From sequence record NC_021529.2: 64,000 nucleotides of DNA; one strand, given 5' to 3'. Positions 22,839-40,005 of the stretch are shown piece by piece. Made by a program: the position numbers and the translations under genes. The first letter of the stretch is position 1. Each line of letters opens with the position of its first letter. The notes below the pieces were generated by a model. The model was not told where the DNA came from. It was given only the letters and a program-made list of their open reading frames with translations, and searched no databases.

Positions 22839-23363
22839 CTATTTTCTTCGACTTGCTTTATTTGCTTTTCGTTTCGCTCTTCTAAGCTCTTTACGTTTAG
22901 CAATCTTATCAGCACGTCGAACAGCATCATAATCCGCTGCACAAGACGCTGCAAACGCATCTGGCTTGAATACGGGCTCTTGACCCACATAACCCAGAAT
23001 AGTTCCCTTAGCTTCGTTATACGCGATATGAGACCGGTGTGCAGGGTCTGGGTTGATATCGACGTGAACTTCGAAGCCTCGCGGGCCACACATTGGTTTA
23101 ACTCTCAGTGCAGTTTCACCAGCTTTATAAACTTCAGTCATCAAACGACTTCGAATACCATCTTTGCTAGACATATAAGCAGGTTCAGTTTCGACAGATT
23201 TGAAAACTTGAGCACCTTTACTACCTTCAAGATGTATGATTATCACAGTAGCGTAACTGATCATGTCACTTTTACGCTTGCTATCACACCCGACGTATAT
23301 AGTACTATTCGGATGACTGTTGTTGATAGCTGTTTCTATTGCTTCCCAATCGAACATTTTCAC
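22839..23363 (-). CDS. RNase H-like YkuK (DUF458) family protein
   Basis: IYVGCDS, RLMTEV, EVHVDIN, KPDAFAAS.AAD. Confidence 0.8.
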   Translation of the reverse strand: MKMFDWEAIETAINNSHPNSTIYVGCDSKRKSDMISYATVIIIHLEGSKGAQVFKSVETEPAYMSSKDGIRSRLMTEVYKAGETALRVKPMCGPRGFEVHVDINPDPAHRSHIAYNEAKGTILGYVGQEPVFKPDAFAASCAADYDAVRRADKIAKRKELRRAKRKANKASRRK

Positions 23364-23409
23364 CTCTATTCAAAACAAAAAAGGGCAGCATAATGCCACC
23401 CTTAGTCAA

Positions 23410-24846
23410 TTAAAAACTGTATCGGTCAACGCCGACAGTTTTCAGCATGATCTTGACTGGCTCAAGTTCACCACCTAACAGTGAAGTTAGAATTGATGGA
23501 CTACAACCCGAAACCAGTGCAGTACCTGCTTCACCTGATTTAACAGGAACGTTGTCTAAACGACCGCGAATGTTCCAGAACACTAGTTGAGGCATTTCAT
23601 AACCAGCACGTGCGTACTTAGCTTTGATTGCGTCAAAGTTTGCAACTTCGCCACGACCATACCAACCACCACCGGTGTTTGCTTGATCGAATTCCATGTC
23701 ACTCATGATAAGCAACTTGGTTGGCATATCTTCTTGTGAAAGATTTGCACGACTCGCACGCTCTAAAAGAACGTCGAAACATTTCCCGATGTTAGTGCTC
23801 ATGTCTTCGCCTGAGCGATTCATGTTGTCAAGACGCTCTTTTAGTGAGCTACCGCGCAACTGGTGGAAGTGCGGATTACTTGAGAACGAAATGAATTGAT
23901 CTTTGAAGATACCTTCATTGCGCTCAGCAACGTAAATGCCTAGAGACATTGCTACTTGCTTACAAGTAACTGCGTTAGCAGCGTGTACACCGTTGATCGG
24001 CGTGCTCATAGAGCCAGACACGTCTACAACAGGGATGATACGCTCATCAGAGCCTTCCATGTAGTTCGGTAGAGCTTTCCATTGCTCGTTCGCTACAGAT
24101 GCGTTACCGCGTTCTACGCTTTTAACAACATCGTATGGGAACAATGCACCAGCGTTGATCTTCGCTTCGCCTTTTTGAAGTGATTCGATGTAGTTTGTGT
24201 AACGAGTTTCAGCGTTACGACCAAATGCTTTTTGATAACGAGCAGACGCTACAGAAGGCAACTTACCGAAGTCGATTGCATCCCAATCTTTCGCACACAT
24301 CTTTTGTTCAACAGTGTCAGACAAAAGAGCAAGAATCTTACGCCACTGCTTAGAAGTCACGCCAAGAGACTTGATTGTGCGCTTGAACACGTGACCGTTT
24401 TTGCTGTTTTCGCGAGGGAACCACTTAGCAGCAAGACCATTCTTGTCGTTGACAATCGCATTTGACCACATAGTGATCGCGTCTTTTTCAAGTTTAGTAC
24501 CGAAAGCAACGATTAAGTCATCGAAACGACCTAATTCTGGTACTTTTGACATTACAGCTCGTGCCACTTCTGGCTGTTCATTACAAAGTTTAGCGAACAA
24601 AGTACGGAAAGTACCACGTTCACCCGCACCACCTCGAACGTCACGAGACCATAGCAAGATGCGAGTCGCTAGTTCTGGGTTTTCTGCAAACGCACGACCG
24701 AACAGTGTTTTAGACTGATCGTTGCCACGCATAGCAGCAATACCGAAGAACAAGTTTAGACACTCGTTACCTGAAGTGCTGTGGGTAACTGCACCGTTTG
24801 CTGTACGTGAATCGTTTGATTGCATAGCGTTCATAAATGCTGACAT
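23410..24846 (-). CDS. DUF2828-type helical + vWA protein (Ro60/TROVE-like architecture)
   Basis: RDVRGGAGER, GRFDD, AAKWFPRE, VVDVSGSM MIDAS, SDMEFD, VFWN; GAGG SD before ATG 24846. Confidence 0.8.
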   Translation of the reverse strand: MSAFMNAMQSNDSRTANGAVTHSTSGNECLNLFFGIAAMRGNDQSKTLFGRAFAENPELATRILLWSRDVRGGAGERGTFRTLFAKLCNEQPEVARAVMSKVPELGRFDDLIVAFGTKLEKDAITMWSNAIVNDKNGLAAKWFPRENSKNGHVFKRTIKSLGVTSKQWRKILALLSDTVEQKMCAKDWDAIDFGKLPSVASARYQKAFGRNAETRYTNYIESLQKGEAKINAGALFPYDVVKSVERGNASVANEQWKALPNYMEGSDERIIPVVDVSGSMSTPINGVHAANAVTCKQVAMSLGIYVAERNEGIFKDQFISFSSNPHFHQLRGSSLKERLDNMNRSGEDMSTNIGKCFDVLLERASRANLSQEDMPTKLLIMSDMEFDQANTGGGWYGRGEVANFDAIKAKYARAGYEMPQLVFWNIRGRLDNVPVKSGEAGTALVSGCSPSILTSLLGGELEPVKIMLKTVGVDRYSF

Positions 24847-24882
24847 TGTTGATTTCCTCATATTAATTTGCTGTATAATGTC
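24842..24882 (-). promoter_or_regulatory. 5' UTR hairpin with ACAGCAA motif enclosing the SD and start codon
   Basis: GACATT-ATACAGCAAATTAAT-ATGAGG-AAATCAAC-AATGTC. Confidence 0.7.
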
Positions 24883-24894
24883 GTTGATGTGATG

Positions 24895-24923
24895 ATTATA
24901 CACGGGTTTAAACCCGTATAAAC
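24895..24923 (-). promoter_or_regulatory. T4-like early promoter with a palindromic spacer
   Basis: GTTTAT-17-TATAAT; ACGGGTTTAAACCCGT at 24902-24917. Confidence 0.7.
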
Positions 24924-24929
24924 ATCTTT

Positions 24930-25247
24930 TTAATTAAATTTCGGATGACGAATCATCATAGCACTGTTTTCGTAAATTTCGATGTTGATTACGCCAGATG
25001 TTTCATACTGAGTTCGAACATTACGATACCCGTGTGCGTCTAGCAATGATCGTACAATCGAAGCACCGCGCTTGTCTTTGTCAGATGCATGAATCGGCAC
25101 AGATATTGTGAACGGGAATGTGATATCTTCTTTCAACGCTTCAGTGAATGACAATTCACATGCGTCGCGATAGTGCTTATTCAACACAATATTGAGATCA
25201 CGCTCACGTTCGTTTATTTTCTGGCTTAACTGATCGTGTGTAATCAT
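24930..25247 (-). CDS. Hypothetical protein, paralogue of the neighbour
   Basis: FPFTISV...GYRNVRTQY. Confidence 0.65.
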   Translation of the reverse strand: MITHDQLSQKINERERDLNIVLNKHYRDACELSFTEALKEDITFPFTISVPIHASDKDKRGASIVRSLLDAHGYRNVRTQYETSGVINIEIYENSAMMIRHPKFN

Positions 25248-25576
25248 TGTTCAACTCTCTTGTGATTCTTATTGATGGTGATCTGAACATACGAATAAGA
25301 CACGTCTCGAACGTCCCTCACATCACCGTTGTACTTACCGAATTGAGCTTTGAAATTTTCAAACCCTTCTCGACGCAACACGTCTTGAACAAGAGTCATC
25401 ATTTCATCACAGCATTCGTTGTATTGCAATCGAACTTGAATAGTTACAGGGAATGAAAACCCACCAACATTACTGATTCTACGTTCAATCGCAGCTCGAA
25501 CATCAGTAATGAACTTATCTTCTCGCGCTCGTCGATTGCTATCTACTTTCTGAATTAATGTGTCATACAAATTCAT
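25244..25576 (-). CDS. Hypothetical protein
   Basis: FPVTIQV...GFENFKAQF; ATGA overlaps. Confidence 0.65.
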   Translation of the reverse strand: MNLYDTLIQKVDSNRRAREDKFITDVRAAIERRISNVGGFSFPVTIQVRLQYNECCDEMMTLVQDVLRREGFENFKAQFGKYNGDVRDVRDVSYSYVQITINKNHKRVEQ

Positions 25577-27572: not shown

Positions 27573-27587
27573 TAATGTGCAATCAAC

Positions 27588-27858
27588 AGACATTCGAGAA
27601 GTGTTTTTTCGTCTTTCCTTAAATCTCATTTGACTAGCTTGTTTCTTATACAAGCAAGCATTTGCGTATTCAGCGCAACGCCAATTCCGTTTAACGATAC
27701 GAAAATCGTCGAAGTCATTTCCTACTTCACGAGAACACCGTTCTCTTAGCTGTCAGGCTTACGTCATCACTGAGAATGCAGCTAGTACGCCCCGTTCGTT
27801 ACCGCTAGATAACTATTAATTTTAGCTTCTTTGATTAGAATATTGCTGTACAATGTCT
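27588..27858 (-). ncRNA. Long ACAGCAA-family structured RNA 1
   Basis: AGACATT/AATGTCT closing stem, TACAGCAA, GACGAAAAAACACTTC shared with 31537-31746. Confidence 0.6.
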
Positions 27859-27869: not shown

Positions 27870-27958
27870 TGGCGGAGATACTGGGAGTCGAACCCAGAGA
27901 ACGCTATTAACGTCCGACACCTTAGCAGGGTGCTGTCATACCATTAGACCATATCTCC
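27870..27958 (-). tRNA. tRNA-Ser(GCT)
   Basis: Cloverleaf, loop CTGCTAA, long variable arm, CCA. Confidence 0.92.
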
Positions 27959-27960
27959 AG

Positions 27961-28140
27961 TTATTTCTTACCGCGTTCTGCTTTGCTAATTTCAACAGCC
28001 GCGATTTGTGCGTTTGCTTCTTCTTCAGTATCATGTGTACCAAGTACACGACCTTTAGATGAAAGAGCAACCCACTTGTTACCACGCTTCTGTACTTTCT
28101 CAGTCAGTTCGTGATATTCATCAAACGTTTTCAATTTCAT
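27961..28140 (-). CDS. Internal-protein-like small late protein
   Basis: MKLKTFDEYHELTE; TATAAATA at 28166-28173. Confidence 0.65.
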   Translation of the reverse strand: MKLKTFDEYHELTEKVQKRGNKWVALSSKGRVLGTHDTEEEANAQIAAVEISKAERGKK

Positions 28141-28461
28141 GTCTAATCCCTCAGTTAGTTTATAATATTTATAACTGAGCAACTTTTAATCAGTGGCATG
28201 CTGCTTTCATGCTCAGACATATATTTGCTCTTAATGCAGGCGTATGCCACGCGCAGCGCAGATCCCATTTGATAATTTAACGACTTACGGGACTCTTAGC
28301 AAGTCTACACATAGCCTTTCAGCTATATCTTCTTTTAAGACCATAGTGTCGTACGGTCTAATCAAGACAATTCTCACTGCCTATCGTCAGTCTAGAACTC
28401 ATAAATGAGGGAAGAAAATGACGGTCACTGACAGAAGTCATGCATAGCACGTTCTTGAATT

Positions 28462-28529
28462 TGGTAGTCACGAGGGAATCAAACCCTCACTCAACGAGTT
28501 TTAGAGGCTCAGAGCAATCATTGTGACCA
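28462..28529 (-). tRNA. Atypical tRNA with CTA anticodon (amber/Pyl-like) or pseudo-tRNA
   Basis: 7-bp acceptor, loop CTCTAAA, T arm, CCA; D arm degenerate. Confidence 0.5.
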
Positions 28530-28763
28530 TTATAATTTGAATCCGATGCTCAACACCCAACGAGATTCATTAGCTTTAGTCGTGCGGTGATAGAACTTAT
28601 CAGCACGAAACCCAAACAACCTATCTTTGATGATATGAAATGCACCATTACAGATGAATTCACCACCAGATTTAGGTTTCTTTACAACCCAATTTATTCT
28701 ATAATGAAATTTACCAGGGTCTTTGTGTTTAGGAATATATGAGTCTTTAGGATAATGAAACAA
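28530..28763 (-). CDS. Small protein with 2OG-Fe(II) oxygenase-like motifs
   Basis: IPKHKD, R.N.V, H...K...SR.VLSIG. Confidence 0.45.
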   Translation of the reverse strand: MFHYPKDSYIPKHKDPGKFHYRINWVVKKPKSGGEFICNGAFHIIKDRLFGFRADKFYHRTTKANESRWVLSIGFKL

Positions 28764-28887
28764 GTAGAAATCAAAGTGTTTGCAATAAAACAGCGTGAAT
28801 ACTCGATATCCAGTTGCCCATTTATCTAATCCCCATTTAAATCTTCTTAACGTTGGTTTTTGAGTCTACATACAAATTACCTTTAAT

Positions 28888-28964
28888 TGGTGCCCAACCC
28901 GAGATTCGAACTCGGATCATCTAGTGTTTGAAACTAGCGCCTCTGCCAATTGGACTAGTTGGGC
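28888..28964 (-). tRNA. tRNA-Leu(CAA)
   Basis: Loop TTCAAAC, CCA, short variable loop. Confidence 0.88.
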
Positions 28965-28970
28965 GAAATA

Positions 28971-29047
28971 TGGTACGCATGGGCGGATTCGAACCGCCAT
29001 CCCTGAGAATTTAAACCTCATGCCTCTGCCAATTGGACCACATGCGC
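28971..29047 (-). tRNA. tRNA-Leu(TAA)
   Basis: Loop TTTAAAT, CCA. Confidence 0.88.
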
Positions 29048-29249
29048 GTTATTGTGTCGTTATGTCGATGTTCACGACACTGCTAGGCTGCCGAGTTATC
29101 AACTCATTATACTAGCCAAGGGCTTCTTACACACTAATCACTACTCGCAAGTAGCAATTCAAACATGCTCAGTTCCGAGCGATTAACCTCTTAGACCGTA
29201 GTCTCGAACCATAACCGACCCCTATGCACATCCAACTTGTGCATCGTCT

Positions 29250-29474
29250 TTAATACTGATCTTGCAACCCGCACTTAGTGCATGTCGCAGTAATTAATTC
29301 AAACCCGCTATTATCAGCAACCATTTCATGTTCACAATCAAGTTGCTTTCTCAATTCATGCAAGTGAGCTTTTTGCTCATGCAACTTCACAGAAGTTCTT
29401 CGAATGCTATCTTCAGTCAAGCGAATTGAAAATTTAACAGATCTGTCTAAGTATTCTTTAACTTCTGGGTTCAT
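29250..29474 (-). CDS. Hypothetical coiled-coil protein with Cys/His motif
   Basis: Start after tRNA-Cys; CEH...CTKC. Confidence 0.55.
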   Translation of the reverse strand: MNPEVKEYLDRSVKFSIRLTEDSIRRTSVKLHEQKAHLHELRKQLDCEHEMVADNSGFELITATCTKCGLQDQY

Positions 29475-29491
29475 GATATAGCTCTCAAAAT

Positions 29492-29565
29492 TGGAGCCCG
29501 AACAGAGAATCGAACTCTGACCGCGGGATTTGCAATCCCTCATACTTCCATTATACGATTCGGGC
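29492..29565 (-). tRNA. tRNA-Cys(GCA)
   Basis: Loop TTGCAAA, U73, CCA. Confidence 0.88.
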
Positions 29566-29570
29566 GTTGT

Positions 29571-29873
29571 TTAGTATGTCGCAAAACGAATTTTAATGTT
29601 TTGCTCATCTACTGGCAATACTGCATACAGATAAAAATGCGCAAATTCAGACATTTCATTTTTATGTCGTTTTATCTGCTCATGTTCTATTGCTCGTTCA
29701 ATCAACCAATAGAAGTCAATTCTGTGCATATCATCAGTAATTGGTATAATCAATGAGCGAACTTCAACGTGCGCTGCGTTTAATGAACTACCATGTATAA
29801 CTTCACCAGTTCTACTATCAACAGCATTACACGGACAACAGATTAAGTGAATTTTCTTACCATGAATATACAT
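29571..29873 (-). CDS. Hypothetical protein
   Basis: ORF between tRNAs. Confidence 0.5.
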   Translation of the reverse strand: MYIHGKKIHLICCPCNAVDSRTGEVIHGSSLNAAHVEVRSLIIPITDDMHRIDFYWLIERAIEHEQIKRHKNEMSEFAHFYLYAVLPVDEQNIKIRFATY

Positions 29874-29965
29874 ACGTACCTACGGAAAATAAACTAGTGC
29901 TTCGTGATTAACTAGACCTTCGATTTCTTCTTCAGTCATAATATATTTCTCATTCAAATGTACTT

Positions 29966-30040
29966 TGGGGTGACCGACGGGAATCGAACCCGCGAGTTCC
30001 TGAATCACAATCAGGGGCATTACCACTCTGCCACAGCCAC
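29966..30040 (-). tRNA. tRNA-His(GTG)
   Basis: Loop TTGTGAT, C73, CCA; position -1 is T. Confidence 0.88.
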
Positions 30041-30115
30041 ACCAAAGTACACTTAATGAACTTTGGGATACATTTACGTGGATCATTCGAGCGTAGCACT
30101 ACTACGCTAGTAAGT

Positions 30116-30427
30116 TTATTTGATTTTTGATAGCATTTTATGCATATCTTTCGTGTTGTTTAGAAAGTCAACATAATGAGCAAAATCAACGTCTCTGTCG
30201 TATTGACGAACTAGAGAACTAGTCTTTGCTAGCCACTCATCAGTGATGATATCATTCAACCCGAAGTTTTTCTTCAGAGCCATTAAGCGTCGCTCGTAAT
30301 CATCACCGTCGATGTTCATTGGATCAGGAGCGATATAGTCAGAAAGGATCTCAGCATTTTTGTCGATACGTTTCATATCGAACTTTTCATCAAGTTGAGA
30401 TTCAGTGTATTCTTTAAATGATTGCAT
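30116..30427 (-). CDS. Internal-protein-like late protein
   Basis: MQSFKEYTESQLDE; AATAAATA upstream. Confidence 0.6.
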   Translation of the reverse strand: MQSFKEYTESQLDEKFDMKRIDKNAEILSDYIAPDPMNIDGDDYERRLMALKKNFGLNDIITDEWLAKTSSLVRQYDRDVDFAHYVDFLNNTKDMHKMLSKIK

Positions 30428-30451
30428 AGTTTTATCTCTTGTCTTAAAAAC

Positions 30452-30694
30452 TTATTTATTGTTCTTGAGATAGATACTATCACTCGAAAGCTCTCTTGTA
30501 AACATATTTTTGAAATAAATTTCAATATCGTCTGAAGTAGTAGAAGATTCAATGCTCAATGCAAGTTCTAGAATCTTACCACGTTTATAACCGGCACGCC
30601 AACAGTCAAACATAAGTCTGTCCATTTGTTTCAGTTTTTCAACTTGATTTGGGTGTACGTATTCGTGAGATTCTAGCAAAGCTGGTGTGTTCAT
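30452..30694 (-). CDS. Hypothetical protein
   Basis: ORF with GAGA SD. Confidence 0.55.
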   Translation of the reverse strand: MNTPALLESHEYVHPNQVEKLKQMDRLMFDCWRAGYKRGKILELALSIESSTTSDDIEIYFKNMFTRELSSDSIYLKNNK

Positions 30695-30719
30695 AATATA
30701 ATTCTCATTTAAAAATGAA

Positions 30720-30793: not shown

Positions 30794-30794
30794 A

Positions 30795-32048: not shown

Positions 32049-32085
32049 GAGATTCTCCTATTAAAAACATATTTATACAAGAACT

Positions 32086-32161: not shown

Positions 32162-32235
32162 ATTAAAAAGATTCGATCCATAAGCTCGTGCAGATGATGG
32201 TAGTAAAGAGAATCCGCGCTCATGTGATCGAAATT

Positions 32236-32311
32236 TGGTGGAAATGACGAGACTCGAACTCGCAACCTCCTACTTGCAAGGCAGGTGCTCTCCCAATTGA
32301 GCTACATCCCC
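32236..32311 (-). tRNA. tRNA-Ala(TGC)
   Basis: Loop CTTGCAA, G3:U70, CCA. Confidence 0.92.
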
Positions 32312-32713
32312 ATTATACAGTCTGTGAACAATCGCATGGCAATTCGGACACAGTGGTATTAAATTTGTTATGTCATTATTCGTGCGGTCGTTGTCTATAT
32401 GATGTACATCAATTACTACATCAAAACCACAATTTGCGCACTTCTTTTCATAATGCTGAAAGCAAATAGTCGTATAGCATTTGGCATTATCGTTCCAGTA
32501 TGCTTGTCTATTGTTCGCACATGAGCGACTACAGAAACGTGAACGTTCATACGCTTTTGTATTTCGTCTGCCAACGAAGATATAAAGTTCACCACAACAC
32601 TCACATCGTTTAGTATGCGTTTTAACTGCACCTAGTCTTCTATCGACTGCTTCTGCTCTGCGTTGTTTGTATTGTTCTGTATGATATTTACCGTTATTCA
32701 TGATGATTCCCAT
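32270..32713 (-). CDS. HNH endonuclease with zinc motifs, overlapping tRNA-Ala
   Basis: CECCG, FCSRSC, VHHIDNDRTNN..NL..LCPNCH. Confidence 0.85.
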   Translation of the reverse strand: MGIIMNNGKYHTEQYKQRRAEAVDRRLGAVKTHTKRCECCGELYIFVGRRNTKAYERSRFCSRSCANNRQAYWNDNAKCYTTICFQHYEKKCANCGFDVVIDVHHIDNDRTNNDITNLIPLCPNCHAIVHRLYNGDVAQLGEHLPCK

Positions 32714-32794
32714 ATTAGTTTAAAATATAGGATCTCATGCTAACTGAGTAGATTCCACCACTTACTTTTGAAAGAAGCAAGAAACTCATATTTA

Positions 32795-33004
32795 TTACAA
32801 CTGCGTGATTGTGATATGATCCCAGCCATATAGACCATCAAGCTCTTCAATCGGCTCACACACAATGTCAGAAATATACTCAGCAACTTTTGCTTCAATT
32901 TCTTCATCAGATAGTTTTTCATCAACGGAAAAAGCATCTTCGTTATTGTTGCCACCGAAATAACCGCCAATGTCATATTCACACCATATTGAAATATATT
33001 TCAT
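32795..33004 (-). CDS. Acidic hypothetical protein
   Basis: GAGA SD; start after tRNA-Thr. Confidence 0.55.
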   Translation of the reverse strand: MKYISIWCEYDIGGYFGGNNNEDAFSVDEKLSDEEIEAKVAEYISDIVCEPIEELDGLYGWDHITITQL

Positions 33005-33029
33005 GTTATTCTCACAGTTGTTTTGAAAA

Positions 33030-33105
33030 TGGTGCCCTGACACGGATTTGAACCGCGAACCTGCTCATTACAAGTGAGCTGCACTGCCAGTTGTGCTATC
33101 AGGGC
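33030..33105 (-). tRNA. tRNA-Thr(TGT)
   Basis: Loop CTTGTAA, CCA. Confidence 0.92.
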
Positions 33106-33110
33106 GATAC

Positions 33111-33223
33111 TGAGTGTCATTACTTGCGCCATCCGAGACTAGAGATACCAACTCTAAACGGGATTCGAACCCGAAACATTTCTTTTATCGGAAGAATTTG
33201 TAATTGTTTGCTGAAAACACTCA
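33111..33223 (-). ncRNA. ACAGCAA-family RNA enclosing an Ile-type anticodon arm and a T arm
   Basis: TGAGTGT/ACACTCA; CAGCAAACAATT; TTCTT-CCGATAA-AAGAA; CGGG-TTCGAAT-CCCG. Confidence 0.65.
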
Positions 33224-33231
33224 ATGGTATT

Positions 33232-33305
33232 TGGCTGGGATATAGAGATTCGAACTCTAACTGACGGAATCAAAATCCGTAGTGCTACCATTACACCATA
33301 TCCCA
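33232..33305 (-). tRNA. tRNA-Gln(TTG)
   Basis: Loop TTTTGAT, U1:A72, CCA. Confidence 0.92.
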
Positions 33306-33312
33306 ATTGTTC

Positions 33313-33561
33313 TTATCGCTGAAAATAGCCGTGACTCATTTTGATCTTATCGGCAAATTCGCGAAGCATACGGTCTGCAAGTTCAAACGATAACTCTTTA
33401 TCAGCGTCACCTTGTTGCTGCAAATCGTGTGCAATTTTACTTCGAAGCTCTTCTGGCTTGTACCCGAACACTTGTTTACCCCAGTGTTCTTTAACTCTAT
33501 GGTACGATTCCATCGAAATGCTATCTCGTCTAGCTTCTTGAAATTCTGAAAATGTTTTCAT
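33313..33561 (-). CDS. Internal-protein-like late protein
   Basis: MKTFSEFQE; TATAAATA at 33585-33592. Confidence 0.65.
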   Translation of the reverse strand: MKTFSEFQEARRDSISMESYHRVKEHWGKQVFGYKPEELRSKIAHDLQQQGDADKELSFELADRMLREFADKIKMSHGYFQR

Positions 33562-33601
33562 GATTATTACCTTTCGTAAAATCATATTTATAAATTATCT
33601 T

Positions 33602-33677
33602 TGGCGGAACCGACGGGGCTCGAACCCGCTTCCTTTCCCGTGACAGGGGAATATGCACCCAGTTACACCTCGGCTCC
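33602..33677 (-). tRNA. tRNA-Asp(GTC)
   Basis: Loop CTGTCAC, G73, CCA. Confidence 0.9.
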
Positions 33678-33896
33678 CCAAAGACAACTTACGTTGCTTT
33701 GTGCTCGTGCAAACCAAACACTAGCTAAACGACTTCTTGATTTCTTAGTTGTACTATACATTCCCTGCTAAGGGCATCATCGTTCTTGTTTTTAGCAAAT
33801 GTCATGAAAGTGAGATCTTGTTATGCAGGAGGTTTCAAATCTCTGCATACAAGCAGACATAACAACCAATGCTCTCATACATTGTCATGGTCAAAT

Positions 33897-33972
33897 TGGC
33901 GCTTCATGTTGGGCTCGAACCAACGACTCACGGATTAACAGTCCGTCACTCTACCGACTGAGTTAATGAAGC
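33897..33972 (-). tRNA. tRNA-Asn(GTT)
   Basis: Loop CTGTTAA, CCA. Confidence 0.92.
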
Positions 33973-33977
33973 AAATA

Positions 33978-34052
33978 TGGCGACGAAGGAGAATTTCGAA
34001 ATCTCGACCTGCGGGTTAACAGCCCGCTGCTCTGCCTCTGAGCTACTCCGTC
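33978..34052 (-). tRNA. tRNA-Asn(GTT), second copy
   Basis: Loop CTGTTAA, CCA. Confidence 0.88.
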
Positions 34053-34064
34053 ATTAAATTAAAC

Positions 34065-34123
34065 AGTAATCGTTTTTTGCTTTTTTAAAATAAAAGTTTT
34101 GTATTGTTTGCTGCAAGATTACT
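34065..34123 (-). ncRNA. Minimal ACAGCAA-family RNA with a Lys-type anticodon stem-loop
   Basis: AGTAATC/GATTACT; CAGCAAACAAT; CTTTT-ATTTTAA-AAAAG; CAAAAAAC. Confidence 0.6.
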
Positions 34124-34128
34124 TAAAC

Positions 34129-34202
34129 TGGCAGGGACATAGAGATTCGAACTCTAACGAACGGGTTTGGAATCCGTCATGCTGCCGTTACATCATGTCC
34201 CT
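34129..34202 (-). tRNA. tRNA-Trp(CCA)
   Basis: Loop TTCCAAA, G73, CCA. Confidence 0.88.
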
Positions 34203-34208
34203 AAAATT

Positions 34209-34282
34209 TGGTAGCCCCAGACAGACTCGAACTGTCAACGTGCGATTATCGGTCGCGTGTTTTACCGTTAAACTATGGAGCT
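34209..34282 (-). tRNA. tRNA-Ile(GAT) with C33
   Basis: Loop CCGATAA, CCA. Confidence 0.85.
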
Positions 34283-34344
34283 AAAGTGAGCACCGAAGTG
34301 CTCTTGTTAATCGGTTAAGTGACTAAACTCCCCGGTTAACAAAT

Positions 34345-34443
34345 TGGCGGAAGACTAGGGATTCGAACCCTAACAGGCATTCCCATGCCCCGACGGTTTT
34401 CAAGACCGTTGCCGCTACCCCGAATCTTTCGGCTAAGCCTTCC
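34345..34443 (-). tRNA. tRNA-Ser(TGA) with enlarged D loop
   Basis: Loop CTTGAAA, long variable arm, CCA. Confidence 0.82.
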
Positions 34444-34449
34444 TTAATT

Positions 34450-34526
34450 TGGATGCGTGAGGTTGGATTCGAACCAACGACCTCCAGCTTATGAGACTGG
34501 TGAGCTGACCACTGCTCTACTCCGCA
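34450..34526 (-). tRNA. tRNA-Met(CAT), initiator-like D arm, bulged acceptor
   Basis: Loop CTCATAA, CCA. Confidence 0.7.
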
Positions 34527-34536
34527 TTTATTCAAC

Positions 34537-34623
34537 AGCTTGCGTTCTTTGGTCTGTTTATCGCTGTCTGAGTCATGCCCGTCGAGCGATCAATAGATTA
34601 AGTATTTTTGCAGTATGCAAGCT
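34537..34623 (-). ncRNA. Variant ACAGCAA-family RNA
   Basis: AGCTTGC/GCAAGCT; ATACTGCAAAAAT; ATCGCT/AGCGAT hairpin; CAAAGAAC. Confidence 0.45.
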
Positions 34624-34628
34624 AAATC

Positions 34629-34715
34629 TGGTGGTCCGCCTAGGACTCGAACCTAGAAGCCCGATTAAGGGCGAGGGATTTACAATCCCCTGACTTACCA
34701 TTAGTCTAACGAACC
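34629..34715 (-). tRNA. tRNA-Tyr(GTA)
   Basis: Loop TTGTAAA, long variable arm, CCA. Confidence 0.9.
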
Positions 34716-34721
34716 AGAATT

Positions 34722-34796
34722 TGGTTCACCCGACGAGATTCGAACTCGCGCATACTTCCTTGAAAGGGAAGTGACCTACCATTAGTCTACGGGTGA
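34722..34796 (-). tRNA. tRNA-Glu(TTC)
   Basis: Loop CTTTCAA, CCA. Confidence 0.88.
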
Positions 34797-34860
34797 ATTA
34801 TATTGTATATTGATTTGCAAGCTAATCAACTTGCAAAGCGATACACAATGTATCTGAATT

Positions 34861-34934
34861 TGGTGGGTCCACAGAGATTCGAACTCTGACTGAAGGATTA
34901 AAAGTCCCATATGCTACCATTACATCATAGACCC
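34861..34934 (-). tRNA. tRNA-Lys(TTT)
   Basis: Loop CTTTTAA, CCA. Confidence 0.9.
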
Positions 34935-35022
34935 AATTTGATTTTCATGTTAAGAGCGTTTGCAAAATAACTCAAAACTAAAATCTCTTGCTTGATTTAA
35001 CTCTTACAAACAAGCTATAATT

Positions 35023-35098
35023 TGGTGCACCCTACGGCTATCGAGACCGTGACCTGCGGGACTTCAATCCGCCGCTCTACCAACTGAGCTAAGGGTGC
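35023..35098 (-). tRNA. tRNA-Phe(GAA), atypical T loop
   Basis: Loop TTGAAGT, T loop CTCGATA, CCA. Confidence 0.78.
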
Positions 35099-35150
35099 AA
35101 TGTGCGAAGATTTATGTTTTAAGTCAGCTATCGCATACAGACTACATGTT

Positions 35151-35228
35151 TGGTACGCATGAAGAGATTCGAACTCTTAACTTCTGGTTTCTAAGACCAG
35201 TGCCTCTGCCAGATTGGGCTACATGCGC
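35151..35228 (-). tRNA. tRNA-Leu(TAG)
   Basis: Loop CTTAGAA, CCA. Confidence 0.9.
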
Positions 35229-35253
35229 ATTAAATTGTAAACTTCTTTTCTTC

Positions 35254-35357
35254 ATTATACATGATGTTTTTATCGTTGTAAACATCTTTTTTAATTTATT
35301 TTGAAGAACTTCGTTTTTCTATGTGTTAATACTAACACTCACTCAAGACATCTTAAA
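35254..35357 (-). promoter_or_regulatory. Two tandem early promoters driving the tRNA cluster
   Basis: TTTACA-17-TATAAT (35282-35254) and TTTAAG-17-TAGTAT (35357-35329). Confidence 0.7.
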
Positions 35358-35434
35358 CACTAATTTGTGAAAAAGTTCGTTAAATTCTATCGTCTCGACA
35401 GTACTTAACGAGATACGGTCCTAAGCGTATCAAC

Positions 35435-35510
35435 TGGCACCCAATACAAGATTCGAACTTGTAACCTTCGCCTTCGTAGGGCGCTGCTCTTCCAATTGAG
35501 CTAATCGGGC
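35435..35510 (-). tRNA. tRNA-Arg(ACG)
   Basis: Loop CTACGAA, CCA. Confidence 0.92.
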
Positions 35511-35517
35511 ATTAATA

Positions 35518-35594
35518 TGGTCCGTGACAAGCGATTCGAACGCTTAACTTCTCCGCCCCAAACGGAGTACTCTACCAGATTGAGCTAGTCACGG
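35518..35594 (-). tRNA. tRNA-Pro(TGG)
   Basis: Loop TTTGGGG, C1:G72, A73. Confidence 0.92.
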
Positions 35595-35603
35595 TTTTTA
35601 AAT

Positions 35604-35679
35604 TGGTCGGTGTGAAGAGATTCGAACTCTTTCCGCTCGCTCCCAAAGCGACCATGCTCCCATTAAACACCACACACCG
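35604..35679 (-). tRNA. tRNA-Pro(TGG), second copy
   Basis: Loop TTTGGGA, C1:G72, A73. Confidence 0.85.
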
Positions 35680-35992
35680 TTTGTTCTTTAACTTTGTTTA
35701 TGATACTCTGCAATCAAAGTACGATAAACAAAATTTTCAATTTATTTTCATTTTATTCAGATAATAAAAAGGACGCTATTTGCGTCCTCAAGTATACTTC
35801 TATGTTATACTATCGGACTACAAGAGGGGATCCCAGTTTTGTTTCGCACACGGATTCGCTAGATACACGAATTCTGAGCGCAGAAAATCGCTGCGTAAAA
35901 TCTCAGTTGAATGTGTAATCGAATGTGTCATTGAATGCTCTCTTGCAAAAATTAAAATTGTTTTTCTTCTTTATTTTATTTATATTCGTGTT

Positions 35993-36901
35993 TCAATCGT
36001 ATAGACAAATTTTACCATGTTTTTCAAAATATTTTAAAATTTCTTCATATTCAACGTCAGAAAGTGTGCGAAATTCACGAAATCCGTCACCAGTAGAAGC
36101 GTCGTAAGGAAGTCTTGTGTATTTTTTATGCAAGTACGATTCATGCATACGAGCATCATTAACAGTTATAGACAATAAATTGTGTATATCAGTCCCACGT
36201 TTTCTCGCACATTCATACACTCTCTGTTTGACACGATAACTATTGCAAATTCCAATCTTACAATTTCCAGCATCATCAGTCCACATGTATAACCCATCGT
36301 GATTTCGATTTGAACATCCCGGACACCCAGAATAAAACTTCAGATTGGCTATTACAGGATTCCACGTCAATTCACACACATGACATGTATGCTCCCATGT
36401 CTTCCCAGAATTAGTGCCCCACGCATCGTTGTAAGGCGAAACAGTCAATGAAGGGTGTCTAGATTTTATAAATTCAACATATTCATCGTACGTATTCTTA
36501 CGACGGCACTCGGGACAGGAATATTTAGAAGTCCACGATACATTTCGCGAGTATTCACTACCACAGTCATGACAATGAAATTCAACTCTATTTCTGCCTC
36601 CTTTACCGTTACCAATATGAACGTATTCATGTTTGATAAGTTCGATTTGAGGATATTTTTCCTCGTGGGTTATGCGAAATTCTTCAAATTTCTCGTTGCG
36701 AACACATCGTTCACATGGCACAGTACCGTGCTTTGAAATTCGAGAATCTGACACTATATGAAAATCACCGCAAACAATACATTCTAGATAGTGATATGAA
36801 TCTAGAATTCTATGTTCCCCAAACCCATCAATAATATCACAACTTTGCTCAATTTCTGGTTTGAGTTCGGGATCTGAACATGAGCACTTATACGATATCA
36901 A
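35993..36901 (-). CDS. Zinc-ribbon repeat + GIY-YIG/T5orf172-type endonuclease
   Basis: Several CxxC pairs; LYMW..CKIGI..R..E..LH..Y..G..E.F. Confidence 0.7.
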   Translation of the reverse strand: MISYKCSCSDPELKPEIEQSCDIIDGFGEHRILDSYHYLECIVCGDFHIVSDSRISKHGTVPCERCVRNEKFEEFRITHEEKYPQIELIKHEYVHIGNGKGGRNRVEFHCHDCGSEYSRNVSWTSKYSCPECRRKNTYDEYVEFIKSRHPSLTVSPYNDAWGTNSGKTWEHTCHVCELTWNPVIANLKFYSGCPGCSNRNHDGLYMWTDDAGNCKIGICNSYRVKQRVYECARKRGTDIHNLLSITVNDARMHESYLHKKYTRLPYDASTGDGFREFRTLSDVEYEEILKYFEKHGKICLYD

Positions 36902-37181
36902 AGATTCTACAGCACGTCTAGCACCGTTTGTTTTCTTCAGTTCAATTTCACCAAAAGCAATTCACAGTCACTCTATCAATCTCAGGTGACATTTCTAATT
37001 TAGTCACACTTAGTCGTTCGAGTCCGGAAATGATAAATTCATAGCGCGCCAATTTAGATTTAGTTGGCGCGCTCATGCAGCCATTAGTTTTAGAGTGATT
37101 GTCAATTATAATCATAACATCTCATTCAATTATGAAGTTCTCAATATAATGTATCACAATTGACATATACTTGCAAATTAA

Positions 37182-37415
37182 TTAACCTAGATGCTTACGC
37201 TTATTCATTTCAACTAGAATTTCATCGTTGTAATGCTTGTTAAGCTGTACAAACTTCTTGTGTTGATCTTCTGTCAACTCATTCGTGTCATTTAGGTGCT
37301 TCAAGAACCCAAGAGGCTTACGAAACGACTTACGATACTCGTTCAGACGTTCATCTGTTAGATTATGCAACTGTTTCGGAGTAAGCAGTACTTTATTAAT
37401 ATCAAAATTACTCAT
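37182..37415 (-). CDS. Hypothetical protein
   Basis: GAGG SD. Confidence 0.6.
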   Translation of the reverse strand: MSNFDINKVLLTPKQLHNLTDERLNEYRKSFRKPLGFLKHLNDTNELTEDQHKKFVQLNKHYNDEILVEMNKRKHLG

Positions 37416-37440
37416 GTGTAACCTCTCTTTGTTTGTAAAA

Positions 37441-37556
37441 TGGTAGTCGGGGCTGGATTCGAACCAGCGACCACGTGCTTAACAGGCAATTGAAAGAGTG
37501 CTGGAGCGATACTTGACAGTATCATTCTTCGTGCTCTACCACTGAGCTACCCGACT
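37441..37556 (-). tRNA. tRNA-Asn(GTT) with a 41-nt insertion between nt 28 and 29
   Basis: Removing 37489-37529 gives a 75-nt cloverleaf with CGTGC/GCACG stem and CCA. Confidence 0.75.
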
Positions 37557-37561
37557 GTAAA

Positions 37562-37852
37562 TTATATGTTGAACTCACCACGTTCGAACGCTGCTAAGAA
37601 CTCAGCAGTTGAATCAAATGCAATGTATTCTTTACCAGTATGTTCTTTTGTTCGAACTCTAACTTTACCACCGCGAACTGCAACTTCGAATTGCCCGTGT
37701 TTAACATGAGCGTCTTTACGAACTGAACCTGACATCATTTTCTCAAGTTTCTTCGCAAAGTTTACGTCGTTGACGGTAGTAGGATTCTGTGGCATAAGTT
37801 TATCCCAACGAGAATCGCGCATTTCTGTAACAAACTCATCGAAAGTTTTCAT
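37562..37852 (-). CDS. Internal-protein-like late protein
   Basis: MKTFDEFVTE; CATAAATA at 37875-37882. Confidence 0.7.
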   Translation of the reverse strand: MKTFDEFVTEMRDSRWDKLMPQNPTTVNDVNFAKKLEKMMSGSVRKDAHVKHGQFEVAVRGGKVRVRTKEHTGKEYIAFDSTAEFLAAFERGEFNI

Positions 37853-37877
37853 TGTACTCTCCTTTTAAAGAAAGTAT

Positions 37878-38405
37878 TTATGTTCGAAGTTTGAACTTCA
37901 GATTTCGCCATTCAAATTTGGATACGTTTCGATTATGATAAAACGAATCCCAGTCAATTGAAATAGGACAATTCTTACTACCAACACGAGCTATGAATAC
38001 GTCGTGAGTCTTTCCGTATCGCTTTCTAAGCTCGTTTACGCGCTTATCGTAGTTAGCGATATAATCAGAGCAAGCTTTGTTATACGCAGCTTTAGAGAAG
38101 CGTTCAGTGCCTGCAAAACTACCGCTTAGATACGGACGGATTACTCGTACACGTTCAGTCGACCATCCCATATTGAAACTGTTCTCAATTTCACCCATGA
38201 TCTTGCCAGTCTTTTTACAACGAGCTAGAATAACCCAACAACGCTCACGTCGAAAATCTTTTCGAGTGTACACATTAACATGTTCTTCGACATAATTAGC
38301 GTGTTTGTTGTTGTAAATCGCTCGAAGACGCTTTCTCTCTTCAGGATCCATTGCAGCACGTTCTTCTTTAGAGAACGCTTGCGCAAATGTCATCGGCACA
38401 TTCAT
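37878..38405 (-). CDS. Hypothetical protein
   Basis: 175-aa ORF with ATGA coupling. Confidence 0.7.
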   Translation of the reverse strand: MNVPMTFAQAFSKEERAAMDPEERKRLRAIYNNKHANYVEEHVNVYTRKDFRRERCWVILARCKKTGKIMGEIENSFNMGWSTERVRVIRPYLSGSFAGTERFSKAAYNKACSDYIANYDKRVNELRKRYGKTHDVFIARVGSKNCPISIDWDSFYHNRNVSKFEWRNLKFKLRT

Positions 38406-38611
38406 ATCATACCTCGCTTACGCTTCAACTGACTTCGCTCAATCTGAGTAGTAATTTGCTTGTCTTTAGCTTTACTGCGACGAGAATTACCCCATCGAAA
38501 CCCAGCGCATAATCCGTGTTGATCACGCTTTAGCTTTTTTGCAAGCCAATGCGGGATATCTTCACCTTTACGCTGGTAATGCTTAGCAATATCAGTATAC
38601 GTTTTACCCAT
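38402..38611 (-). CDS. Small basic protein
   Basis: GGAGA SD. Confidence 0.6.
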   Translation of the reverse strand: MGKTYTDIAKHYQRKGEDIPHWLAKKLKRDQHGLCAGFRWGNSRRSKAKDKQITTQIERSQLKRKRGMI

Positions 38612-38622
38612 AATATTCTCCG

Positions 38623-38861
38623 TGGACGGGTGGGAGAATCGAACTCCCTACTGGCGCAACACATCGTCAACCCGATAAGAGTTTCGAAGTAAGAGCCTAT
38701 CAGCATATCAAATTCATTGTCTTTATTTCAACACACGACATTTCGACCTGTCAATGTGTCTTTTCTCGACACGTCCGAGTGATTCAGCACCATCACAGAT
38801 AGCGAATCTGCAACTGTACTAATGTTCGGCATACACTGCACACAGAGCACCAAGCCCCGCC
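38623..38861 (-). ncRNA. About 240-nt RNA with a 3' T arm and acceptor-like stem (tmRNA/T4 rnaC-D-like)
   Basis: 5' GGCGGGG, 3' GGGAG-TTCGATT-CTCCC-ACCCGTCCA. Confidence 0.45.
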
Positions 38862-38872
38862 ATAATAAATTG

Positions 38873-38950
38873 TGGTGACCCCAACAGGACTCGAACCTGT
38901 AACCTACCGATTATGAGTCGGTTGCTCTAACCGAGTTGAGCTATAGGACC
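38873..38950 (-). tRNA. tRNA CAT, probably Ile2 (lysidine type)
   Basis: Loop CTCATAA, ileX-like body, CCA. Confidence 0.85.
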
Positions 38951-38954
38951 ACGA

Positions 38955-39323
38955 TTATCTTTCAAGAAATCGACCAATCTTCGCTGCAAAAATGTTCTCT
39001 TCTTCTGCAATCAGAGCAACAGATTTTACTTGATGAAATACATCTTGATCATGTAAGTTATCTAGTTTACCTGCACATTTTGTCAGTTCTTTGATTGTAC
39101 GTCTAATCTCTATGCCGTCATGCTGACTTACTTCAGGATGCGTGTTGAGATTATCCATAACGGGAATTATTTTACCATAACATCCCATTCCGATAAAGTT
39201 TATCACAAGTCTATACTGCATTTCAACAGCAAATGAGCAATATTTTCTAAGATTGCGCTTTACAATTTCACAGCGATGTAAAATGCAATCTAACTCGCTG
39301 TTTATCTCATCAAACTTATTCAT
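38955..39323 (-). CDS. Hypothetical protein
   Basis: GAGG SD before MNKFDE. Confidence 0.6.
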   Translation of the reverse strand: MNKFDEINSELDCILHRCEIVKRNLRKYCSFAVEMQYRLVINFIGMGCYGKIIPVMDNLNTHPEVSQHDGIEIRRTIKELTKCAGKLDNLHDQDVFHQVKSVALIAEEENIFAAKIGRFLER

Positions 39324-39341
39324 AAACCCTCGTTTAAATCT

Positions 39342-39456
39342 GAGGTGAAGTGCAGGACTCGAACCTGCGACATCCGGCGTGCATGTGAATGCAGCATGAA
39401 ATCTTATCAGACTTCTTTTTTGGGCCGGCGCTCTAACCAACTGAGCTAACTTCACC
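39342..39456 (-). ncRNA. tRNA-like RNA with a 45-nt two-hairpin insert replacing the anticodon loop
   Basis: Canonical D and T arms, CCGGC/GCCGG stem, G-1:C73, ends TCA. Confidence 0.65.
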
Positions 39457-39469
39457 ATTGTAAAAACAC

Positions 39470-39599
39470 ATTGATGCGGGTGCAGGATTCGAACCTGCGT
39501 CACGATCTTATGAATGATATGCGAATTGATTGCCGTACAGATTCTTAACAGAATCAGTTTTTTGCTACGTGTGCTGCCACTACACCAACCCGCATCAAT
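39470..39599 (-). ncRNA. tRNA-like RNA (CAT, 8-nt loop) with a 49-nt insertion at 28/29
   Basis: 12-bp terminal stem, D and T arms, TACGGCAATCAATT motif. Confidence 0.65.
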
Positions 39600-39867
39600 A
39601 TGTTTTCGAGAGTGCTTGCATAGACCTAACGGTAATTCCCTACACAAGCACCAAAAAATCCTATTATATTTGCCTTAGCTAATCACAACACAACCTGGAG
39701 TCGTGCGCTTTAAGTACGGGTTGATTGACCCGTTCGCGTATGATTAGCGTAAAAGTATGATTACGCACCTTTTCTTCTTCAATGTCCAAGGCAAAAAGGA
39801 CGATGAATACTAGTGCGAGAAGATATACAATCAAATTGTTCACCTCGCTTAAACAGTGAGAGTACAT

Positions 39868-39990
39868 TGGTCGAGTGTAACAGAATCGAACTGTTCCCAC
39901 GATCTCCCTATGATATGCGTAAATTGGTTGCTGAATATAATCATGTCTGATTACAGTATGCTACGTGTGCTGCCACTACACCAACACTCG
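39868..39990 (-). tRNA. tRNA-Pro(AGG)-like with a 49-nt insertion at 28/29
   Basis: C1:G72, A73, CCA, loop ATAGGGA; 74-nt cloverleaf once the insert is removed. Confidence 0.7.
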
Positions 39991-40005
39991 ACCAATGTAC
40001 TCTCG

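Follow-up and report, generated by a model that had tools for sequence, protein, structure and literature searches.

The stretch of DNA considered here (the window, 64,000 nucleotides (nt) in full) comes from the genome of Vibrio phage nt-1 (NC_021529.2), a KVP40-like myovirus of the T4 type; a window position equals the record position minus 62000. Its minus strand encodes a Ro60-like protein of the DUF2828/DUF7788 family (ORF169), as well as ten RNA elements and one weak copy that share a motif composed of a helix (helix X), a CNGCAA sequence and an A-rich strand. The motif is carried by four tRNA genes (E1-E4), where it forms an inserted module, one YrlA-like RNA (O4), two small hairpins (O1 and O2), two large RNAs (L1 and L2) and a hairpin in the 5' untranslated region (5'UTR) of the DUF2828 gene itself. 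These features, together with the tRNA genes among which many of them lie, are located as follows (bp, base pairs; aa, amino acids).

23410-24846, minus strand: Ro60-like gene ORF169, DUF2828 and DUF7788/vWA domains, 478 aa (Pfam PF11443, 3.8e-29; PF25043, 1.3e-46)
24840-24882, minus strand: 5'UTR/start hairpin of the Ro60-like gene, putative translational operator, GACAUU-AUA-CAGCAAAU-UAAUAUGAGG-AAAUCAAC-AAUGUC
27587-27857, minus strand: L1, large motif-bounded RNA (~270 nt), AA-GACAUU-GUA-CAGCAAU ... GACGAAAAAACACUUCUCG-AAUGUC-UG, followed by a terminator
27870-38950, minus strand: 28 ordinary tRNA genes in one cluster (ARAGORN and Rfam), with motif RNAs interspersed
31535-31746, minus strand: L2, large RNA (~210 nt), paralogue of L1, AGACAAU-AUA-CAGCAAC ... 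GACGAAAAAACACUUCGGU-AUUGUCU
33110-33222, minus strand: O4, YrlA-like RNA, helix GAGUGU/ACACUC and UUU-CAGCAAAC, then T-arm-like and D-arm-like hairpins
34064-34122, minus strand: O1, small open-form hairpin (59 nt), AA-GUAAUC-UUG-CAGCAAAC ... CAAAAAAC-GAUUAC-UG
34536-34622, minus strand: O2, small open-form RNA, GCUUGC-AUA-CUGCAAAA ... CCAAAGAAC-GCAAGC-UG
34949-35006, minus strand: weak, doubtful and unconfirmed copy, UAAGAG ... CAAGCAAG ... CUCUUA, with an imperfect motif (AAGCAA) and no A-rich strand
37441-37556, minus strand: E1, tRNA-Asn(GUU)-type gene with a 41-nt module between positions 28 and 29 of the anticodon stem (module core 37493-37535)
39342-39456, minus strand: E2, tRNA-like gene with an intact 5-bp anticodon stem (module core 39384-39426)
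39473-39594, minus strand: E3, tRNA-like gene of CAU type with an 8-nt loop and the module (module core 39525-39567; ARAGORN intron mode)
39868-39990, minus strand: E4, tRNA-like gene with the module, loop AGACAU variant (module core 39923-39965; ARAGORN intron mode)

The product of ORF169 is named 'RNA-binding protein' by both RefSeq and PHROG 850. It belongs to a DUF2828/DUF7788 family found in 711 of 50,697 phage records, with relatives in giant viruses. Its structure was modelled by AlphaFold2 from 32 homologues (predicted local distance difference test score, pLDDT, 77; predicted template modelling score, pTM, 0.75). When the model was compared with the PDB by Foldseek, the only full-length matches were Ro60 proteins, namely that of phage phiLo (9l5y_A, E 4.4e-7, TMq 0.57, 512 columns) and that of Xenopus (1yvr, E 5.3e-7, TMq 0.59), with template modelling scores of 0.55-0.59 for the two, and all the remaining matches covered the vWA domain only. 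Among the predicted viral structures of BFVD, the matches were DUF2828 proteins of phages and giant viruses, followed by phage proteins annotated as 'Ro-like RNA binding protein' or 'TROVE' at E ~3e-6. The residues of the MIDAS (metal ion-dependent adhesion site), D275, S277, S279, T351 and D383, do not vary among the 32 sequences of the alignment (A1). Sequence searches of the PDB with ORF169 or its profile gave no significant match to Ro60, the profile reaching the phiLo TROVE protein at E 0.75 only, over the MIDAS stretch; the relationship is thus visible by fold comparison only, which indicates a Ro60-like fold in a separate sequence family. In Ro60, Y RNAs are bound on the outer surface of the protein, while RNA 3' ends enter the central hole.

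The helix X of the motif is 5-7 bp long and has a different sequence in each copy. One of its strands is directly followed, on the 3' side, by nnn(n)-CNGCA(A/U/C), and the other is directly preceded by the A-rich strand (typically AAAAAnn) and usually followed by UG. Two topologies exist. In the open form the RNA enters and leaves via helix X and the junction strands enclose a variable interior, whereas in the capped form, represented by E1-E4, the order is A-rich strand, hairpin, CNGCA strand. The minus-strand elements listed by the sequence-only reading, an earlier inspection of the letters of the window, are real, each of its coordinates being the 3' end of one of them (the copy at about 34950 is weak). 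The order that it gave, stem, motif, A-rich strand and stem, applies to the open forms but is permuted in E1-E4, where the A-rich strand is followed by the capped helix X and then by CNGCA. The elements at 27588 and 31537 were also considered as an unrelated two-copy repeat or a middle promoter, which was rejected since they are the 3' ends of L1 and L2.

By itself, ACAGCAA is barely enriched in the window (20 matches, 12.4 expected). The longer CAGCAANCAAT, with one mismatch at most, has 15 matches against 6.2 +/- 2.5, a level reached by none of 100 shuffles, and its four exact copies are all found on the minus strand within 31726-39933. When the window is scanned permissively for the helix, many chance matches arise on both strands, so the support for the open forms at the level of the window comes from conservation across phages and not from those scans. 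The motif proved to be covered by no family of Rfam 15, a point on which the sequence-only reading had made itself dependent: in the window scan no family reaches its gathering score on the motif RNAs, except tRNA on E1 and E2, and scans of the window and 12 related loci at gathering and E-value thresholds return only tRNA, tmRNA, a sub-threshold YrlA (in Jobypre) and a sub-threshold ROOL (in LP-064).

The four capped elements are complete tRNA cloverleaves of 115-123 nt with intact acceptor, D and T arms. In E1, E3 and E4 a module (41-47 nt) interrupts the 5' strand of the anticodon stem at 28/29-29/30, while in E2 the module and a second hairpin stand in place of the anticodon loop, so none of the four has an uninterrupted 5-bp anticodon stem with a 7-nt loop. 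All of them are found by ARAGORN only if introns are allowed, and E3 and E4 by this intron mode only. The capped helix X is closed by a U-GNNA-A loop in each. A covariance model of the capped form (R1) finds in the window exactly E1-E4 (33.7, 40.3, 50.6 and 37.5 bits, respectively; E 1e-5 to 1e-9), the next match scoring 12.7 bits; with the Rfam tRNA model (RF00005, cut-off 29 bits) E1 scores 49.8 bits over 113 nt and E2 55.9 bits. E4 is conserved in KVP40, and E1 and E2 correspond to KVP40 tRNA-Pseudo-3 and tRNA-Pseudo-5. The anticodon-like hairpin that the sequence-only reading saw after the motif is present in E1, E3 and E4, where it is the tRNA's own anticodon arm, but the open forms have none. 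The GNNA-capped hairpin was also tried as an anticodon mimic and rejected, since NN is free in its U-GNNA-A loop and the tRNA has its real anticodon loop downstream.

The names given to the homologues in KVP40 (tRNA-Pseudo-3/4/5), and the listing of such genes as tRNAscan pseudogenes in papers on T4-like phages (PMC1524935), suggest that E1-E4 might be decaying tRNA pseudogenes, with the repeated CAGCAA due to shared ancestry or chance. This explanation is hardly credible considering that the acceptor, D and T arms are intact, that two to five copies found by R1 are present in each of the four other KVP40-like genomes, as in every KVP40-like genome examined, and that the capped module is kept, with compensatory helix changes, across phages of Vibrio, Aeromonas and cyanobacteria and in dozens of metagenomic contigs. 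For example, the helix X of E3 is wholly swapped with pairing kept, from GAUUC/GAAUC in nt-1 to CAAGC/GUUUG in VH7D. In an alignment of 40 capped sequences all six pairs vary on both sides (63 cells, compared to 15.2 +/- 3.0 in shuffles), and pairing is 100%, compared to 37-56% with the partner slid. As the seeds of this alignment were chosen as paired, a cleaner covariation figure comes from a search of IMG/VR viral contigs with a pattern (AAAA, UGNNAA loop, CNGCA, T-loop) that does not impose pairing. This RNA-first pattern gave 77 matches at 73 loci, and in 57 of the 77 the ten free bases on either side of the loop make 4 or more of 5 pairs, with many different stem sequences. The statement of the sequence-only reading that the stems differ while pairing is kept is therefore borne out, by these matches as well as by the helix swaps in E3, O1 and L2.

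Another explanation could be that the tRNA genes E1-E4 each contain a small intron, the module being excised by the RNase H-like neighbour described below or by a host nuclease and ligase, and the motif acting as a splicing or processing signal. Indeed, once the module is taken out, E1 and many relatives from metagenomes have a perfect 5-bp anticodon stem and a canonical 7-nt loop again; by eye, E1 reads CG|module|UGC-CUGUUAA-GCACG, and looping the module out leaves the 5-bp stem with a canonical Asn GUU loop. Annotators have also labelled some of these genes as intron-containing tRNAs, such as the tRNA-Leu of PX29, joined from two pieces. However, no anticodon loop is recoverable from E2, the insertion site at 28/29-29/30 shows no bulge-helix-bulge geometry by inspection, and between 22000 and 41500 of the window no Rfam match to group I introns, hammerhead, pistol, twister or other ribozymes was found at E <= 5. 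Besides, the anticodons of E1 (GUU) and E3 (CAU) are already supplied by normal tRNA genes of the cluster, and among the tRNA-embedded forms from metagenomes the anticodons vary widely (Asn, Thr, Gly, Ser, Glu, Asp, Arg, Lys, Pro, Met/Ile). Diversity and duplication of ordinary tRNAs argue against a simple decoding role and pick out no single nuclease target. The motif is also present where excision would leave no tRNA, namely in the small hairpins, in the RNAs of 210-270 nt, in the 5'UTR and in permuted tRNA-like RNAs that lack an anticodon loop. Excision of an intron is an improbable account. In general, it is mainly the occurrence of the same motif in RNAs without a tRNA body and on the protein's own mRNA that disfavours the rival explanations.

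The open forms were detected by regular expressions requiring pairing. The interiors of O1 and O2 are 27-55 nt long and those of L1 and L2 about 180-240 nt; none of these four has a tRNA-like domain, and E1-E4 have the normal, not the permuted, tRNA order. The helix of O1 covaries between GUAAU in nt-1, GCAAU/AUUGC in KVP40 and GAAUG/CAUUC in 1.081.O, and that of L2 between GACAAU/AUUGUC, GGCAAU/AUUGCC in F86 and GAUAAU/AUUAUC in 1.081.O. O2 has the same helix in KVP40 (88% identity over 100 nt), and the homologues of L1 in KVP40 and F86 keep both helix and motif. In O4 the order of hairpins is permuted (T before D) and the second junction strand is not A-rich. This RNA is kept in four phages (alignment A3) with helix X and UUU/UUA-CAGCA invariant; of the 20 pairs that the RNAalifold consensus predicts, 6 change on both sides with pairing kept, four of these 6 being in the T-like and D-like hairpins. 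O4 fits the permuted tRNA-like order partly, having T-like and D-like hairpins without an acceptor stem. The tRNA mimicry proposed by the sequence-only reading applies to some carriers, which are tRNA-like in the manner of the Ro60/YrlA system, but four copies are instead complete cloverleaves with an insertion in the anticodon stem.

One copy lies, as had been noticed from the letters alone, at the start codon of the DUF2828 gene: the Shine-Dalgarno sequence (SD, GAGG) is inside the loop and the AUG of ORF169 inside helix X. The leader fold GACAU(U)...CAGCA(A/U)...SD...AUGUC, with the start codon included, occurs in nt-1, KVP40, VH7D, F86 and 1.081.O, and the leader of D479 uses another register, with a helix GAAAU/AUUUC over the SD. 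Six unrelated DUF2828 genes (loci L032, L034, L040, L042, L063 and L078 of the collected set) are preceded by a minimal motif hairpin ending just before or at the SD. Autogenous repression classically has this layout, in which a site resembling the target lies where translation of the protein itself starts. Judging from its sequence context, the 5'UTR copy probably serves the autoregulation of the Ro60-like protein. As in the autogenous operators of T4 gp32, RegA and ribosomal proteins, a copy of the protein's putative RNA target covers the SD/AUG of the mRNA that encodes it, while, in contrast to those operators, repression by DUF2828 proteins is a prediction from sequence.

Motif RNAs and DUF2828 genes co-occur across distant phage groups far beyond chance, as the sequence-only reading would require. 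Among the 73 RNA-first loci, 26 have a DUF2828-like open reading frame in the few kilobases (kb) of sequence covered, often at a distance below 500 nt and on the strand of the motif. With the motif reversed to ACGNC, in the same pattern and with the same T-arm anchor, only 13 loci were found, of which 1 was complementary and none had DUF2828. In a protein-first sample of 79 loci fetched via the DUF2828 protein, the strict open-form signature has 70 matches on the gene strand (in 36 loci) versus 6 on the other strand, and shuffles give 6-11 matches for both strands together. CNGCAA itself is present at least once in 78 of the 79 loci; within 500 nt upstream or 1000 nt downstream of the gene it occurs 209 times in sense and 81 times in antisense orientation (background 0.85 per kb). 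ARAGORN in intron mode was also applied to 80 DUF2828 loci and abandoned, as it returned few elements and many tandem-tRNA artefacts.

By inspection, the RNAs adjacent to DUF2828 genes are small hairpins, permuted tRNA-like RNAs and ~330-nt RNAs, all bounded by helix X and CAGCAA. A full match to the permuted order (T-arm, loop-capped acceptor stem, D-arm) is seen in L034 (6725-6839) and L063 (7790-7898), and relatives in the phages wV8 and Jobypre meet this order fully as well. The Felixounavirus wV8 has four copies beside the gene (L162 6755-6822, 6921-6980, 7317-7386 and the permuted tRNA-like 7404-7531), the P100-like Listeria phage LP-064 three tandem copies directly upstream of the gene (L163 3666-3927), and the cluster-L mycobacteriophage Jobypre three copies beside it (L164 4485-4741). 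The middle copy of Jobypre matches the Rfam YrlA family (RF02553) with 39.3 bits and E 1.8e-5, below the cut-off of 69 bits. In the cyanophage BUCT-ZZ01 the DUF2828 gene has two capped-in-tRNA copies directly downstream, in Aeromonas phage PX29 the gene and the copies are separated by about 2.5 kb, and in nt-1 the 5'UTR copy is accompanied by same-strand copies 2.7-15 kb upstream of the gene. In the window a match to YrlA (23.5 bits, cut-off 69) is an artefact spanning the T-arm of E3 and the D-arm of E2.

Since the elements lie between tRNAs in long polycistronic clusters, the motif might also be a strand-specific processing or stability signal, or the site of another factor, either a host protein or the product of the gene next to ORF169, with only an indirect link to DUF2828 through tRNA clusters. 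The neighbouring gene is the following.

22839-23357, minus strand: gene of an RNase H-like protein (PF04308/DUF458, Pfam 3.9e-17), directly downstream of the Ro60-like gene

Among the about 160 loci fetched via either the motif or the Ro60-like gene, 12 have homologues of PF04308, with cyanophage BUCT-ZZ01 and L062 among these. This recurrence is compatible with such a signal, yet these are only 12 of about 160 loci. Moreover, the motif flanks DUF2828 genes with no intervening tRNA (the upstream triplet of LP-064, the downstream copies of L006-L027, and Jobypre), it is located on the translation initiation region of DUF2828 mRNAs in two registers, and the reversed-motif control, anchored on the same T-arm, had DUF2828 at 0 of 13 loci. 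A processing signal or a site of another factor is therefore unlikely, although somewhat less so than the excised intron. The PF04308 protein may nevertheless be an accessory, or third, component of the system.

In bacteria and some phages, Ro60 (Rsr) is accompanied by Y RNAs of YrlA type, in which a terminal stem carries GNCGAAN0-1G and is joined to a permuted tRNA-like domain (Chen et al. 2014, PMC4201824). Phage phiLo encodes Ro60 with Yrl1/2 (PMC12135203), and Aravind's group has described ROT/TROVE proteins with tRNA-like partners in jumbo phages (PMC7824862). The nt-1 system resembles Ro60/YrlA in several respects: a ring-type helical (HEAT-like) domain is combined with a vWA/MIDAS domain; small RNAs are encoded beside the gene, several per genome; their terminal helix bears a short conserved single-strand or bulge motif near the 5' strand; and some of the cargo imitates tRNA, with the T-arm before the D-arm and a loop-capped acceptor stem (in part O4; fully L034, L063, wV8, Jobypre). 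It differs in that the protein belongs to the DUF2828/DUF7788 sequence family, which has no TROVE Pfam match, that the cargo is wider, including complete tRNAs in normal order with anticodon loops (E1-E4) and RNAs of 210-330 nt, and that the mRNA of the protein itself bears an operator-like copy. Species 1 and 2 of T4 (rnaC, rnaD) are likewise stable, tRNA-like RNAs in a T4-type tRNA cluster, but they were rejected as homologues, as the helix, CNGCAA and the A-rich motif are absent on reading by eye.

Considering the fold similarity, the covarying motif in several RNA architectures and the genomic co-occurrence, it is likely, with a probability of roughly 0.7, that the DUF2828/DUF7788 protein is a divergent Ro60, and that the ten motif RNAs are its partners of Y-RNA type, docking via the shared motif, with the 5'UTR copy allowing self-repression. 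Several points weigh against this interpretation. The AlphaFold2 model is only moderately confident (pLDDT 77), and in Pfam ORF169 has no match to TROVE (PF05731) at E <= 10, only to DUF7788, DUF2828 and VWA_CoxE, so that the Ro60-like nature of the protein, which had been proposed from the letters, stands by fold (full-length PDB matches and BFVD) but not by a TROVE sequence match. The RNAs differ from YrlA in that the 5' strand of helix X is followed, at 3-4 nt, by CNGCA(A/U/C) and that an A-rich strand is present, in place of GNCGAAN0-1G, and the A-rich strand itself varies and is missing from O4. The open forms are supported by the strand and shuffle controls and not by a formal covariation test. 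As regards location, the tRNA-embedded copies of nt-1 are 12-15 kb from the DUF2828 gene, and R1 places the capped form near only 2 of the 80 best DUF2828 loci (strongly at L058 and L062), a result that led to the recognition of the open, permuted form. Finally, DUF2828 genes adjoin same-strand tRNA clusters in many other phages, and this neighbourhood could inflate co-occurrence with anything linked to tRNA.

If the protein is a divergent Ro60, it would dock on helix X and the two junction strands, CNGCAA on the 3' side and the A-rich strand on the 5' side, at a site that is the analogue of GNCGAA in bacterial YrlA but not identical to it. Outside the dock, each RNA would then be a variable cargo or effector: nothing at all, a permuted tRNA-like body, a domain of 210-270 nt or a complete tRNA cloverleaf. 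In E1-E4 the dock would be a GNNA-capped side arm on the anticodon stem, beside the anticodon loop. Free protein in excess may bind the 5'UTR copy over the ribosome-binding site and AUG and thereby repress its own translation. Like binding and autoregulation, a downstream role is inferred, presumably the tethering or gating of enzymes handling RNA or tRNA during infection, and possibly counter-defence. The use of the RNAs as decoys for anticodon nucleases or as repair substrates, which had been suggested earlier, is speculation and one possibility among several.

Homologues of the DUF2828 protein have been called Ro60/Rsr-like in two recent papers. In Felixounavirus Bas63, the Ro60/Rsr-like gp130, encoded upstream of tRNA genes, counters the Ppl defence (PMC11482910, PhageMaP preprint), and the Ro60/Rsr-like protein CKA15_055 of a Listeria phage, found in virions, is encoded downstream of three very abundant unannotated transcripts (PMC12282133). 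Both PMC11482910 and PMC12282133 guess that Y RNAs are nearby, and neither defines the RNAs or a motif. By position and description, gp130 and the CKA15_055 protein belong to the same family as DUF2828, orthology being taken from the descriptions in the papers. Related DUF2828 proteins, gp047 of wV8 (45% identical to the nt-1 protein) and LP-064_077 (34%), are encoded beside tRNA clusters. The analysis goes beyond those papers in that the RNAs are located in relatives of these phages (wV8 L162 6755-7531; LP-064 L163 3666-3927) and share the motif of nt-1; the guesses made for Bas63 and CKA15_055 are thereby sharpened, as the exact RNAs can be named in such relatives. A full-text literature search for DUF2828 returned no phage or RNA paper. 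What appears to be new here is the motif, its use in four RNA architectures, its insertion into entire tRNAs that have anticodon loops, and its operator-like copies.

A broader proposal is that DUF2828/DUF7788 proteins form a second, sequence-distinct branch of Ro60-type ribonucleoproteins, for which the helix with CNGCAA and an A-rich strand is a portable tag on diverse RNAs, the tagged tRNAs being a new class of RNA usable in tRNA-centred conflicts with host defence; we consider the odds of this to be evenly balanced. In that case the tag would be found on genuine tRNAs whose anticodon loops are live, on permuted mimics of tRNA, on large structured RNAs and on the mRNA of the protein itself, and a tRNA body of decoding type would be held by a Ro-like ring at its anticodon stem. 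RNA partners and a testable recognition motif are proposed here for a common phage protein labelled only as 'RNA-binding protein', 'vWFA' or 'DUF2828', and the elongated 'tRNA pseudogenes' of KVP40-like, Aeromonas and cyanobacterial phages would become conserved functional RNAs. The system would also link Ro60 biology to phage tRNA clusters and counter-defence. A modular RNA tag in four architectures, for which Rfam has no model, may be useful for the curation of RNA families and for understanding the evolution of Y RNAs from tRNAs.

Several other RNAs were noted at DUF2828 loci. In L006-L027, L045 and L046 a conserved ~330-nt RNA is located about 100-900 nt downstream of the gene, with the layout GGAUCG-GUA-CAGCAAAAAGUAC ... 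CGAUCC followed by a terminator, and another small motif hairpin lies before it; at L009, the only locus of this kind that was scanned, it had no Rfam match. L028 contains a phage tmRNA (8605-9054, 75.4 bits) in a tRNA cluster beside the DUF2828 gene and four motif RNAs. In LP-064 a large ROOL-like RNA (L163 2471-3022, 87.4 bits, E 1.6e-16, under the gathering score of 99.1 bits) lies about 1 kb upstream of the DUF2828 gene, and a gene of an RtcB-like ligase is located 1.3 kb downstream of it.

The tRNA cluster of nt-1 itself is poorly annotated: the RefSeq record has zero tRNA features over 27870-38950 on the minus strand, where several short coding sequences of a 'hypothetical protein' overlap tRNAs or motif RNAs. 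Within the cluster a gene of an HNH endonuclease (32270-32713, minus strand) is annotated so that it overlaps the 3' part of a tRNA-Ala, and HNH genes are similarly placed in F86, D479 and wV8. A 261-nt spacer at 38612-38872 (minus strand) has a strong predicted fold (-79.9 kcal/mol) and ends with a T-arm-like hairpin (GGGAGUUCGAUUCUCCC) and ACCCGUCCA; it was considered as a tRNA with a long intron, which ARAGORN did not call with long introns allowed. Upstream of E4, at 39991-40414 (minus strand), two copies of GAAAAAGTTGTTGACTT, with a promoter-like TTGACT box, are followed by a highly structured spacer RNA. At the edge of the RNA region, the gene annotated as 'RNA ligase / gp57B' (40662-41117, minus strand) matches the Acb1 anti-CBASS family (PF23474, 7.4e-47), i.e. 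it encodes a 2H phosphoesterase and is a counter-defence gene.

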